Of a DNA stretch of 64,000 nt, positions 57,394 through 64,000 are shown one piece after another (position 1 is the first letter of the stretch; every line of letters begins with the position of its first letter). A model generated the notes under the pieces. The model worked only from the letters and a program-made list of their open reading frames with translations, was not told the origin of the DNA and searched no databases. Location: contig JAIVFI010000024.1 of the NCBI GenBank assembly GCA_025558095.1, positions 1 through 64,000 on the forward strand, written 5' to 3'. Position numbers and translations under genes: made by a program. The DNA is from Hyaloraphidium curvatum SAG 235-1 (taxonomy: Eukaryota > Fungi > Monoblepharomycota).

Positions 57394-60278
57394 TCAAGTG
57401 CAGAGGCAGGCGCTCCCGGAGAAACTGCACGGCGAAGCCTGGGCATTGTCGCATGCGCAGATTGCCGAGTTGGGTGGAAGACACACGGCTGACAACTCGG
57501 AATGAGGATCAGGGAGCGTGCGGTGTCCGCAGTCACCCACTTGCAAAAGCAGCCGCGCCGGATGCAGTGAAGTTGGCAGGCAAAACGTAGTCGGGTCCAT
57601 TGCCGGCCGGGGCAGCTGGCGCCAGGGATGCGATTAAGGACGCCGCGGTCGATCGCACAAGACAGCCCACCGCCGAGCCCGCTTGCGCCCCTGAATGCGG
57701 CGCCGATGCTGCCGGGCGCCATCAAGACGTTGGTAAAGTTGTGGAGCGCCTGGGTGTTGTCGATGTTCCCCCGGACAAGGTTCCAGGGCGAGAGCTTGCC
57801 TATCTCGATGCGGAGCCGGTCGCCGAAGCCCCTGAAAAGGGTCGATCCGCCCGCGACAACAATCTTCATGGTCATAGCTCCCGCCCTATAGACCTGGGGG
57901 GTAGCCGCCACGGCCGCCGCGGCGATGTTCGCCAACCCGGGTCCGCCTATGCCGATGATCCGGGGCCTGAAGATCGCCTCGGGGACCGTCCACCTTAGAT
58001 CGCCTGGCACGGTGACGTTGGTTCCGTTGGCGAGCCTGAATCGGGCGGACGGCGTCCTGCCCCTGGATGCCGCGGCGTCGGGGACGGAAGCAAAGAACAC
58101 GTTGCGGGCCTGCTTGAGTTCGGCGGCCTGGGCGGCGGTGATGCGGAGCTGGCGGGCGATGTAGGAGTCCAGGTCGGAGGCGACGAGCGTGGTGGTCCTG
58201 ATCGCTGCCAAGTAAGTGAAGATGTTGCCATTCTGCTTGAAGACGGGGACCGCGCTCGCGGTCTGTCCAAAATCCAGGGAGAGGGCCTGGGTCCCGTCCG
58301 AGACTGCACATCCGAGCCGATGATGAGCCAATAGCAGGTGACGGAAGACGAACAAAGACGCACCCGACCCCGTGATGAACGGCTCCACGAGCGCAGGCTG
58401 GCCGATCCACAGCGCCGCGGGTGAGAACTCGGTCATGACCCTGGTCGAAAAGGCCATGCGCACCGCCATGGTGTTGAGCGGCGAGACCAGGAAGATCAGT
58501 TTGTTCGCGACCTGGGCCGTGTTGCGGACGCCGAGGAGGCCGAGAGCGTACTTGATCACGAGGACTAGGCCAGGCCTCCACGATGCGAGGAATCAGCGGC
58601 GCCGCGAGATCGCGCATCCCTTCTCCACCCACGTGTCCGACAGAATGCCGTTGACGATCGGATTTTTGGTGGGCCTGCCGGAGTCGACCGCCGGCCGGCC
58701 CACCAGGATCGTCCCGTTGGCGAGCGTCACGTAGACGTTGGGGAAGCTGAGCTGCGGCATACCGTCTCCGGCGTAGCCAGCTCGCACGGTGGTCGATCCG
58801 AGATCCAGCACGAGCACCTTGGACGCGTCGAGGGCCTGCTTGACGAGGGCAACCTCGGGCTTGAATGGGGTCGTGACGCTCGGCTGGCCGCTGCGGATCT
58901 TCTGGGTCTTGGAGTCCGGCTTGCTCGACAGGCAAGCCTTGGCCTGGACGGGCGGCGTTGGCAGGATGAACGGATGAACGCCGCACTGTTCCGCTCACCA
59001 GTGTAGGTCTGGTCACCGCAGCGACACCGTGCTCGCCAACGGCAACGCACTGGCAGCATATGTCCGAAATGCTCTTCTCGCACGGCGTCGAGCACTCCAC
59101 GGCGTTGAAGATGCCCGTGATGGTGGTCGCACTCACCGAATCTGCACGCGACCCCGCGGGTCAGTCGCTGCTGGATCCGCAAGACTGCCTCGCGATGTCA
59201 CCTTTGGTCCAGCCCGTCGGCGACGGCCCCTTCCACCTATAGATGACGTTGCCATAAGCGTCGCTGTCGAGGCCGAGAGCAATGCAGTCGGTTGTTGTTG
59301 GGCAGTTGATGTTAAGAAGATCCGAGACCCCGAAAAAGACGGACGGCGGCACCACGCCGAAGGTCCTGCGGGATTTGCTGTAGTAATAGATGCGAGCGAC
59401 TGTGCTGTCGTCCGCGGCGCTCTCGGTTCGGAAAATGAACGTGGTGTCTCCCACAACCTGCACGACCTTGAAAGGATCCAACGTAGCGTTCGGAAAGGGA
59501 ACCGGCGTCCATTTGGTGCCGTTGAATGCCATAACGGTGGAGAGGTCCCCTACGGCCATGCAATCGGTCCGGGAGGAGCAGGTGACGTCGATCATGGCAG
59601 GGACGGAAGCTTGAGAGAGAATCCATGTTCCATTCCTTCTCACGAAGATCAGGCCTGAGAATGACAGCCATGTCAGAGTAGCTAGGGTGCGTGTAGCGGC
59701 GCCGCACCTCCAGTTTGGCGAGTCTCGTCGGCAAGCGCGGCGTCGGCGCCGACCGCCACGCAGAAGCTGGCGTCCACACATTCGATGTACGAAAAAGTGA
59801 ACGTCTTTGGCACCGCAAGCGCCCGCTTGATAGACCATCCCGTGGCTTGCCACGTCGAAACGGGCTGACCCGCCCCAGCGGCAATGCACTGACCCCCGGC
59901 CGGGCAGCTCTGCCACGAGATCAGTGCCCCGTCCGCGGAACAAGGCGTGACTCTCACGATGCTCGATACATTGTAGTCCGTGTCGAGCTGCAGTGAGAAG
60001 GTGCCGTTGCGCGTCGCGCCAGCTGCCCTGCTCGCGCCCGAGAACCCGTAGACATTCCCCAGGAGGCCCGCGGCGAGGAACAGTTTGGTCGACGGGTTGA
60101 AGGAAACGTCCACCTGCGGCACGTGAGATCCGCGCGGAACGGGGTATGCGGAAGACCCCACCAGGTTGTCGACACTCGGCACGCCGGCGACGGCGATGTT
60201 CGTCCACTTCACCGCGTCCGCGACCGCGGCGAGAGCGGCGAGCAAAACGTACCCGAGAGGGGCGAAGCGCGTCGCCAT
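57394..60278 (-). CDS. Signal peptide + Cys-rich beta-propeller-like repeats + divergent actin-fold domain + Cys-rich tail
   Basis: Exons 60278-60162, 60113-59708, 59654-59202, 59141-59017 and 58943- join in phase via GT-AG introns; actin motifs VLVLDLGSTTVRAGYAG..P, PLN, LDFG..AVPV, VPEAIFRP, VVAGGSTLFRGFGDRL..EI; terminal exon VCLPPNSAICACDNAQASPCSFSGSACLCT*. Confidence 0.78.
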
Positions 60279-60857
60279 CTTTCCGACTTCAACGCGGCGA
60301 CCTGCGGGTTCCGGCGACGACCTCGACGTCCCCCCCGTCCAGAGCGTCCTGATCGAAAGTGCCCAGACCTCATAGCATCGCCGGCAATCGGCACCGAAGT
60401 GGCTCCGCACCGGTTCCCGAGACCGGGGCCTGGCTCAAGGCGCACGCAGATTTGAGGATAAGAAGTAGGCACGGCACCTTTCTTTCTGCTCATCCGAGCT
60501 TGTAATGCGTTGAGGATGTGTGTGCGGGTGGCCGAAGCGTGCGGACGCGGTAACACCCACCAGCCATTGAAGGGCCGAGAACATTTGCATCGCCGCGCGT
60601 TGCACTCCCTTGTCACTCCCTGGCAACAGCAGTGCCAACACGCCCTCGGAACTGGAACAGATTCCGCTTTCGGGCTCAAGGGATTCTCAGGGGTTGATCT
60701 CAAGCAATCTTGGATCCGTCCCTGAACCCAAGGGCCGACAAGGTCCCTAGCGTGCACCACCAGCCCGAGGCCGGAGCAACAGCATCGCCTTTTCCGCTCG
60801 ACCCCAGTTCGCTATCGCTCGTTCTACCTCACTCCGTCGACGCTGCAACATCGGTTT

Positions 60858-62622
60858 ATGGCGGGGCCAAGCGTCTGGAGTGTCGTCGTTCGAGTGTTGG
60901 CGGCCGCCGTCGCGGCCCTTGCGGTTCTGGGGAACGCGGCGGCGCAGGACACGGGGGACGAATTGCCTCTTGTCATTGATCTTGGCAGCAGCACCACCAA
61001 AGCTGGGTTCGCCGGAGACGATGCGCCGCGCGCTGTGTTCCCCACGCTGGTGGGGTGGCCGCGGGTTCGGGTGAGTGCTGCGTGCACGACCGCACGCCAT
61101 CTAGTAATGCGAGTCCGTCGTGCCCATATCCGAAGGGCGTCATGGTCGATATGGGCACAAAGAATGCTTATGTTGGAGACGAGGCCGTGGCGAGACGTGG
61201 CATCTTGGCCCTCAAGTACCCGATCCAGTACGGCATCGTCACTAGTTGGGAGGACATGAACAAAATCTTTGTGCGTGCGCGTTGAGCCGGCTCACCGACT
61301 GGGAGTTCTGACGTGTTTTCTGACGTGTTCCAGCACCATGTCTTTTACAACGCGCTGCGGGAGGCACCAGAAGAGCACCCAGTGCTGATAAGTGAGTGAT
61401 GCGTGACCGCAGGCGCCTGCCTGAGCTCAAGCAGATATTGCCCCGACCGTGACAGCTGAGCCCCCTCTCAACCCCAGCGCAAACCGGGAACGAATCACGC
61501 AGATGATGTTCGAAACCTTCGGAGTGCCCGGTAAGTCGTTCGGGGCCAAGCATATTTCGAGGATTAATCTCACGCCCCGGTATCGGCGTCGTAGCCTTCT
61601 ACCTCGTGAAGGAGCCTGTCCTCTCTCTGTACGCGTCTGGAAGGACGACCGGTACGCCAGGAAGGTCCCATTCGTGTCATCCTTGCTGATTTTGCATGCG
61701 CCATTCTAGGTCTCGTCCTCGTGTCAGGCGACCAAGTGACGCATGCGGTTCCAGTGCACAAGGGCTCCGTTGTGTCTCCTGCCATCATGCAGCTCAAGCT
61801 CGCTGGTTCGGACATTACCGCCTACCTGGTCCAGATGCTCACGGACCGCGGGTACGAGTTCACGTCAGGCTCGAAAGGATACGTGAAGGACATCAAGGAA
61901 ACACTGGGCTACGTCGCATTCGGTGCGTTGGACCGCCGTTGATCTCTCGGTCCGATCTCTGATGGTCTTTCAACAAGACGTTGCACGCGAGATGGCGGCC
62001 TCGGGCATCGACAGGGAATACGAACTCCCGGACGGCACGGTGATCACAGTCGGCAACGAGCGATTCCGGGCGCCGGAGGTAAGCTCAGCGGCGGGCACTA
62101 GCCCGTACGGCCCAGGATTGCCTTTATGATCCGCGCCGAACGAATGTCCTGGCCATACCAGATACTGTTCAACCCCGCCCTCGCAGGCAAAGAAGGCATG
62201 GGAATTTCGCAGCTAATCTACACCAGCATCCAGAAGTGCGACGAAAGCATCCGCAAGGACCTCTACGAGAACGTTGTCCTGGCTGGCGGCTCTACGAGTG
62301 GGATCAACCTGCAGCGCACTCGCTTTGAGAGCTGACACGCTCATTGCCAGTGTTTCCCGGCTTGGTCGAGCGTTTGCAGAAGGAGATCAGGGCACTGGTG
62401 ACCCCGAACACTAGGGTCACGATCATCGCCCCCCCCGATCGCGCTTACAACACTTGGATAGGTGATGGTCACGACCGTACTCACCCACAATTCGGCTCTC
62501 TGATCTGTTCTGTTGTAGGTGGTTCCAGCCTCGCGACGCTCTATACGTTTCGCGATATGATGATAACGAAGCCGGAGTACGAAGCATCGGGGCCGAAGGT
62601 CGTGCACACGAAGTGCTTCTAG
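60858..62622 (+). CDS. Actin paralog with N-terminal signal-peptide-like extension (10 exons)
   Basis: Exons 60858-61070, 61136-61270, 61334-61391, 61456-61530, 61595-61651, 61710-61922, 61978-62078, 62162-62297, 62351-62461, 62519-62622; [57 protein letters not shown], ends HTKCF*. Confidence 0.92.
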
Positions 62623-62990: not shown

Positions 62991-64000
62991 ATGACGGCGG
63001 ATGCCGGCGGGCCGTACTCGTGCGAGCGCGGGGCGGTGCTGCGGTTGGATGCGTCGCGGTCGAGGGGGGACATCGGGGCGTACGAGTGGGGCTTCGAGGC
63101 GGCGCCGCCCGAGCGGCCGCCGGGGCCGTACGATCCCGAGATGGACCCGCCGCGGGCGGACGCGAAGAAGACGGCGTCGAGCGCGGGGGGTGCGTCGGTC
63201 GTCGTCTGCATGGATGTGATGGTGCGGGTCACCGTGACCTCCAAGTCTGGGGACGCCAAGCGGTCGTCGGAGCCGGTGCGGATCGCGTGCATCCCCCGCA
63301 CCGTCAAGCCCGCGGACGTCTCCAAAACGGACGAGATCAAAAAGGCCAACCTCCCCCTGTTCCCTGGGCAGTTCGATTTGGGCCGCAACGTCTGCGCCCT
63401 GGACGACGGCCCCGTCGGGAAGGACGAGGCGCAGCACTACTACCACCGCCCGCCCGGCTTGCAATCGTGGCTCGATGTCGGGTACCGCGTGCAGCAGGTC
63501 GACGATTCCGTAGGGGGGCCGGGGCCCTTCCACGGGTTCTGGCTCGTCTGGCTGCCGCATACGCTCCCGATCTGCCGGCAGCGCGCCGTCAACAGGAAGC
63601 TGTACCCCAAGGACCCCGAGGGCGTGTACCAGCACAACGAGCAGAGGAAGCAGCCGCGGCCGCCGCCCAAGAAGGGCTCGGACGCGCCGCATCCGTACGT
63701 GTGCGGCATGGGCAGGTTCGCGGCGAGCGTCGCGGCGCACGAGGGCAAGCACACGGAGCTGATCCTGGAATCCGCACGCCGGGAATTCGCCCGCGTCGAG
63801 CAGCGCCGAGGACCGGTGGACCCCGCGGGGCGGATCGAGGGGCTCTGCTTCGCGGACCGCGCGAAGCTGGTGACGGGGGCCGACGTCGAGATCCTTTACT
63901 CGGACGAGGAGGTTGGCAAGGCCACCTCGGGGAAGGAGGCCGAGGAGCGGATCCACGAGATGCTGGTCGCCGACGGGTTCGACGACTACGCAATCGTCTA
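62991..64000 (+). CDS. PKD-like domain + HExxH-containing hypothetical protein; runs off the window end
   Basis: Open frame absent from the ORF track (no stop in the window): MTADAGGPY..VLRLDASRS..YEW.F; later GPFHGFW, VAAHEGKH, DPAGRIE. Confidence 0.65.
   Translation, partial: MTADAGGPYSCERGAVLRLDASRSRGDIGAYEWGFEAAPPERPPGPYDPEMDPPRADAKKTASSAGGASVVVCMDVMVRVTVTSKSGDAKRSSEPVRIACIPRTVKPADVSKTDEIKKANLPLFPGQFDLGRNVCALDDGPVGKDEAQHYYHRPPGLQSWLDVGYRVQQVDDSVGGPGPFHGFWLVWLPHTLPICRQRAVNRKLYPKDPEGVYQHNEQRKQPRPPPKKGSDAPHPYVCGMGRFAASVAAHEGKHTELILESARREFARVEQRRGPVDPAGRIEGLCFADRAKLVTGADVEILYSDEEVGKATSGKEAEERIHEMLVADGFDDYAIV

Follow-up and report, generated by a model that had tools for sequence, protein, structure and literature searches.

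A transcribed, leader-bearing actin paralog of the fungus Hyaloraphidium curvatum, head-to-head with a propeller/actin-fold gene and predicted to be exported

Actin is regarded as a cytosolic and nuclear protein that depends on cytosolic CCT, which its folding normally requires, and known extracellular actin has leaked from cells or been released unconventionally. Conventional actins are typically more than 80% identical to each other, while actin-Arp4 and dynactin Arp11 are non-polymerising actin/Arp modules. Divergent second actins such as Chlamydomonas NAP1 and the apicomplexan and ciliate paralogs are duplicated, fast-evolving and cytosolic, and none has been reported with an export signal (PMC12050087). 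In mosquitoes and mammalian plasma, extracellular actin is ordinary cytoplasmic actin that leaves the cell without a signal peptide (PMC4450071, PMC13763760), and eukaryote-type actins, BARP and ActM, have been described in bacteria (PMC6906331). The literature searched, with most subscription journals outside its scope, contained no report of signal-peptide-bearing actins.

The early-diverging pond fungus Hyaloraphidium curvatum carries a leader-bearing actin gene at positions 60858-62622 (plus strand) of the window, i.e. the whole 64,000-nt stretch analysed, and this gene is referred to below as the window actin. It shares with conventional actin (PF00022; PDB 1d4x, 4efh) a full-length fold, an acidic mature start, a KCF end and an intron after codon 41, and differs from it by the leader, Q137E, D154V, H73Y, R177Q, mostly changed cross-strand contacts and the lack of a sequon. 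A 62.3% identity to the conventional actin of its own genome over 363 residues, the retention of only H161 among five ATPase residues and the 29-aa exonic leader excluded its assignment as a conventional actin, and the initial label of "near-canonical" was accordingly too strong. It is an actin-family member, but neither a conventional actin nor a known Arp. Like the divergent second actins, and like one divergent actin without a leader in this genome, it is duplicated and fast-evolving, and its leader sets it apart from them. A likeness to the actin-Arp4 and Arp11 modules may be proposed by analogy (an actin-fold scaffold, a weak ATPase and a partner without D-loop), although these are not orthologous to the window actin, which is predicted to be extracellular as the mosquito and plasma actins are in fact. 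BARP and ActM likewise represent actin in an unusual setting; unlike them, the window actin has nine spliceosomal introns, partly in common with fungal paralogs, and its placement near bacterial sequences in trees is weak.

The window actin consists of 10 exons that splice into 1203 nt and encode 400 aa, with the stop at 62620-62622, and the intact frame that had been proposed for it from the genomic sequence was confirmed. All nine introns (61071-61135, 61271-61333, 61392-61455, 61531-61594, 61652-61709, 61923-61977, 62079-62161, 62298-62350 and 62462-62518) are of the GT..AG type, with lengths of 53-83 nt. When searched exon by exon, with single exons as queries, the PF00022 profile matched in all six stretches tested. 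The gene is transcribed and spliced: in a public run (X1), exons 1-6 are connected in a single contig, with GT..AG skips located exactly at the predicted coordinates of introns 1-5, and among the joints listed its piece ends also fit introns 6 and 9. This run consists of assembled, unstranded contigs, probably of RNA, in which the transcripts of the window actin and its neighbour are fused, so that it does not map transcription starts. As the same contig is unbroken over 60561-61069, the 29 leader codons (60858..60944) lie in exonic sequence, contiguous and in frame with the rest of exon 1 as initially described. The upstream in-frame stop lies at 60723, and after the start no further in-frame Met occurs before residue 74, within subdomain 2, in agreement with the earlier observation that no Met separates the leader from the actin fold. 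A retained intron was ruled out as the source of the leader by the unbroken contig, by weak donors (3.3-3.5 for the best candidates, where 41 real introns have a median score of 7.3) and by the absence of a branch point; the CAG at the predicted cleavage site is a possible acceptor, but it is not accompanied by a branch-point motif.

Signal-peptide features (n/h/c leader, -3/-1 residues, later helix, retention motif) were assessed by a rule-based check only, and by this check the window actin reads as a classically secreted protein. Its leader has one Arg, a 17-residue uncharged Ala/Val/Leu core (highest 11-mer hydropathy 2.8) and Ala-Ala-Ala before the predicted cut, after which the mature protein would start at Gln30 and run into an acidic stretch, as the initial annotation had noted for the mature N-terminus. 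The predicted mature protein is acidic (pI about 5.7) and contains neither a membrane helix nor a retention signal; exon 10 (62519..62622) encodes the KCF terminus, without HDEL/KDEL or a membrane anchor. A second leader actin of the genome, here called the C8 actin, has a leader that also ends just before Gln, and in both genes the charge is positive before the hydrophobic core and acidic after it, with small residues at -3/-1 and Gln at +1. Leaders are absent from all cytosolic actin-family genes of H. curvatum. Both leader actins are devoid of sequons, the sole actin sequon (N12) being lost in each, and both have lost C17, C217 and C257, three of the five actin cysteines. These losses are suggestive only as a sign of export, because the chance expectation is itself about one sequon, and leaderless divergent actins have N12L too. 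Taken together, the leader anatomy, the leader of the C8 paralog, the sequon loss and the secreted-type neighbour make export of the window actin quite probable, although the requirement of actin for CCT counts against a model in which the leader actins fold in the ER.

The substitutions named in the initial annotation are all real in an alignment to the genome's own conventional actin, the numbering of which is used here: N12L, G15S, H73Y, Q137E, D154V and G158Q. Exon 1 (60858..61070) encodes the leader and actin residues to 41, including a P1 loop with N12L, G15S and M16T, and exon 2 (61136..61270), seen in the RNA contig and aligned, encodes the D-loop and subdomain 2 with H73Y. Both the KCF terminus and the D-loop had been described as retained; the former is, whereas the latter is kept only in part (H40V, Q41R, G46D). 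Exons 3 (61334..61391) and 4 (61456..61530) are present in the RNA contig, as is exon 5 (61595..61651), in which the alignment places Q137E and A138P. Exon 6 (61710..61922) contains the P2 loop with D154V and G158Q, the changes E167K, Y169S, H173P, R177Q and D179K, and a 1-residue deletion near 201; a 4-residue deletion near 229-232 lies in exon 7 (61978..62078), an altered hydrophobic plug (F266L, L267A, L269K) in exon 8 (62162..62297) and K336A in exon 9 (62351..62461).

Conservation was tested for eight residue sets, among them the pocket, catalysis, cleft and contact residues, which we took from general knowledge of actin structure. The window actin keeps 15 of 24 residues of the nucleotide pocket and 3 of 8 residues of catalysis and phosphate release (9 and 5 changed, respectively), the C8 actin 23 of 24 and 8 of 8; among Q137, D154, H161, H73 and R177 only H161 remains in the window actin. 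Since its pocket is conserved to the same degree as the remainder of the sequence (62% vs 61%), the pocket reads as released constraint and not as a designed new site. Nucleotide binding appears possible because D11, S14, K18, D157, K213 and E214 are retained, and the initial suggestion of a nucleotide-independent actin was thus not borne out. The alternative offered with it, an impaired ATPase, is plausible from the altered pocket and catalytic residues. Glu-Pro at the equivalent of Q137/A138 occurs in Hsp70 and MreB, so that Q137E and A138P alone need not abolish the chemistry, but D154V, G158Q, H73Y, R177Q and K336A jointly point to weak hydrolysis. Among the residue sets, losses in the window actin are heaviest at the cross-strand contacts (7 of 23 kept, p = 0.003, as one of eight sets tested), while the D-loop-side contacts are largely kept (11 of 14); the loss of lateral contacts suggests that the protein does not form two-stranded filaments. 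In actin, Gln137 is an element of the ATPase and the 266-269 plug a cross-strand element (PMC3038201). An ATP-poor extracellular space had been offered as the reason for the altered pocket, and this rationale is weakened by the C8 sister: with a like leader and an intact pocket, it indicates that export does not require pocket loss, and the remodelling is specific to the window copy and no consequence of export.

The C8 actin (contig C8:300236-302013, minus strand; also L031:4236-6014) has 409 aa and is 78.3% identical to conventional actin and 61.4% to the window actin. It keeps H73, Q137 and D154 and shares all nine intron positions with the window actin, its intron 2 being called GC..AG (first such call), and of the two it is the stronger candidate for an actin that is exported and polymerises. 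The genome also encodes two conventional actins with identical protein cores, and separate loci for Arp1, Arp2, Arp3, Arp4, 5-like and other Arp-like genes, all without leaders. A leaderless divergent actin on contig C12 (C12:667.9-669.6 kb, minus strand; L049) is 75% identical to conventional actin and has an altered D-loop. Four of its six introns (131-1, 222-1, 259-3 and 305-1) are at positions used by both leader actins, for which the chance is below 0.001 even if only one tenth of positions were intron-capable, and position 41-3 (after codon 41) is common to the leader actins and both conventional actins. Because of the four positions in common with the C12 actin, the leader actins point to an origin by duplication of a fungal actin gene and not by bacterial import. 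Protein trees place them weakly with long branches including bacterial actins (support 85/90), and their grouping with the C12 or conventional actin was not rejected (p-AU 0.08 and 0.27). With the introns mapped, neither a bacterial origin of the actin nor a BARP-like gene transfer was supported. Orthology to Arp1, Arp2, Arp3 or Arp4 was also rejected, as these have their own genes, no intron position of Arp1, Arp2 or Arp4 is in common with the window actin, and the phylogeny does not cluster it with Arp1.

Pairwise dN/dS between the window and C8 actins is 0.24, at a dS of about 1.3 that is near saturation, and the branch values are roughly 0.33 for the window actin vs 0.15 for the C8 actin. 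With conventional actin as the outgroup, synonymous changes are even (38 codons in the window copy vs 35 in the C8 copy), whereas amino-acid changes number 85 vs 24 (p = 0.00035). The window actin is therefore under relaxed purifying selection (about 0.3) and still constrained. A pseudogene was rejected given the intact frame and splice sites, the ratio well below 1 and the spliced transcript, and the earlier argument against decay was sustained. That the gene is a redundant duplicate in early decay, with the C8 gene doing the job, might account for a pocket conserved no better than background, for two small deletions and for a dN/dS of 0.84 in exon 9; this is nevertheless highly unlikely, as the frame and all nine splice sites have stayed intact across that synonymous divergence, the pairwise and branch ratios are low and the spliced transcript is present.

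The neighbouring gene (57394..60278, minus strand; KAI9015364.1), here the partner, has 10 coding exons with all introns seen in RNA contigs and encodes 798 aa comprising a predicted signal peptide, a Cys-rich beta-propeller, a distant actin fold without D-loop and a 6-Cys tail. It has about 20 cysteines outside the actin fold and 10 N-glycosylation sequons, some of them within the actin fold (10-11 in the partners overall). Its repeat region is modelled as a beta-propeller (pLDDT 64) with best matches to YCF48 and GH74, and resembles surface proteins of Actinomycetota; a single-sequence model of the whole protein was too poor for use (pLDDT 33). According to the gene models, the two divergent genes share an upstream region of 579 nt (60279..60857), and an RNA contig reveals a 5' UTR intron of the partner at 60499-60560. 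Both divergent transcripts occur in one contig across this region, so with the 5' UTR intron their 5' ends may overlap. The C8 actin is likewise head-to-head with a partner paralog (KAI9027814.1), with 143 nt between start codons, and the divergent pairing thus occurs twice in the genome, although head-to-head gene pairs can be coincidental or merely co-regulated. The two partners are 86% identical (dS 0.42) vs 61% for the two actins, so the window partner did not diverge in step with its actin; as the partner split is far younger than the actin split, the partners have since undergone homogenisation or re-pairing. A third partner-type gene (C43:59.7-62.4 kb, plus strand; L042), about 40-55% identical to the window partner and containing a Lys/Thr-rich linker, has no actin gene within 16 kb. 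A search of 1.84 billion proteins with one partner exon had matches in H. curvatum and otherwise on just one metagenome contig of 2.3 kb, which shows about 50% identity and is the sole relative seen outside this genome; a word search with the partner's actin-fold frame gave no match, and scans of metagenomes and viruses found no such locus. On the other side of the window actin, a long intronless frame with a PKD-like start (62991-64000) runs off the window end and is absent beside the C8 pair.

Actins with leaders were also observed elsewhere, all judged by eye. A twin-arginine leader precedes an actin on a bacterial-type contig (P0160; L051:329-1575); this actin shares about 77% identity with eukaryotic actin, and its frame is broken near 1115 in the assembly. 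Eukaryote-type actin matches were found in 7 of 401 Myxococcota genomes (L067-L073), of which six look like resident bacterial genes (41-84% identity) and one (L072), an Arp1 with introns, is fungal contamination. In one of them (L073, G141 C3:1151292-1151894) the actin has a Sec-type leader and the same Q137E/A138P as the window actin, with 4 of 24 pocket residues and 23 of 25 residues of the barbed-end contact surface kept. A 419-aa actin that has four sequons behind or within a hydrophobic-leader protein chain (P0139; L055, L056) occupies a 1.45-kb AT-rich piece capped by short repeats, which we take to be possibly a ciliate gene-sized chromosome. A fragment of a leader-bearing actin (P0207) was also recovered, and an actin-like stretch in an Acetobacteraceae MAG (L058) is degenerate and of fungal type, and probably entered the MAG as a contaminant during binning. 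The leader actins of bacteria and of the ciliate-like contig are best read as independent of the window actin, since they form no supported clade with it.

From the observed gene structure, transcription, paralogy and gene pairing, we infer a mechanism that extends to export, ER folding, binding and function. An actin paralog would have been re-routed into the secretory pathway, where the leader would be cut after Ala29 and the protein would fold in the ER; without a retention signal or anchor, it would be exported to the wall or medium along with the partner, co-expressed from the shared upstream region. The two actin folds may bind each other via actin-to-actin contacts and form a heterodimer or a short capped oligomer, much as non-polymerising actin/Arp modules do in dynactin or in chromatin remodellers, while the partner propeller may grip a wall glycan or another surface ligand. 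The window copy would be a derived paralog that perhaps holds nucleotide as a folding cofactor, hydrolyses it poorly and forms no two-stranded filament. The presence of both genes on spliced contigs of one run and the loss of cross-strand contacts with retention of the D-loop side are consistent with this mechanism. As a whole, an exported, poorly hydrolysing, non-filament actin paired with a propeller protein at the cell wall is a tentative proposal, about which we are somewhat more doubtful than confident.

Other roles would also fit parts of the evidence. Exported actins might serve as decoys that sequester actin-targeting poisons or enzymes from competitors and predators before these enter the cell, the window copy having diverged for other ligands or for resistance to modification and the partner anchoring or displaying the bait. 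The C8 sister, which keeps 30 of 33 residues of the ligand-binding cleft and nearly all of the pocket, could act in this way, the fast asymmetric change at equal synonymous divergence is typical of conflict-related genes, and exported-type actins are found in bacteria too; yet the window copy, with 19 of 33 cleft residues kept and R177 lost, would be a poor mimic, and dN/dS stays well below 1 with no sign of positive selection, so that a decoy seems unlikely. A secreted antimicrobial or microbe-binding protein may be considered by analogy to mosquito actin 5C, a protein that leaves the cell, covers bacteria and works together with a secreted partner; in insects, extracellular actin and an MD2-like protein jointly bind bacteria and kill them (PMC4450071). 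The neighbouring propeller, with its resemblance to actinomycetotal surface proteins, would be compatible with such a role, but the insect protein is an ordinary cytoplasmic actin without a signal peptide and the predicted mature window actin is acidic, and we consider this role improbable.

The leader itself may be uncut or serve something other than export: it might anchor the protein in a membrane, for which its 17-residue core is long enough, or keep it in the lumen of the ER or vacuole. The Arg-rich C8 leader might instead direct its protein to mitochondria, since it has six Arg, one of them at the second position ahead of the cut, an arrangement also seen in mitochondrial presequences. 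The small -3/-1 residues and Gln at +1 of both leaders, a charge bias that favours translocation of the C-terminus, the single Arg of the window leader and the missing retention motif speak against these fates, which are rather unlikely. A comparably low probability is given to a broader scheme, in which the C8 actin would polymerise in the wall or secretory lumen as an actin scaffold outside the plasma membrane, the window pseudo-ATPase and the propeller/actin-fold proteins would cap and anchor it, and exported actins would form an unrecognised class with repeated origins in fungi, ciliates and bacteria.

Returning to the proposed exported, non-filament actin with its propeller partner, the leader actins are small and thus directly testable for export, CCT-independent folding, nucleotide use and polymerisation. 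The C8 and window paralogs constitute a natural experiment, in which an intact and an altered pocket are combined with a like leader. If the proposal is true, a dedicated family of signal-peptide actins would demonstrate that the actin fold can be produced in the ER and put to extracellular use.
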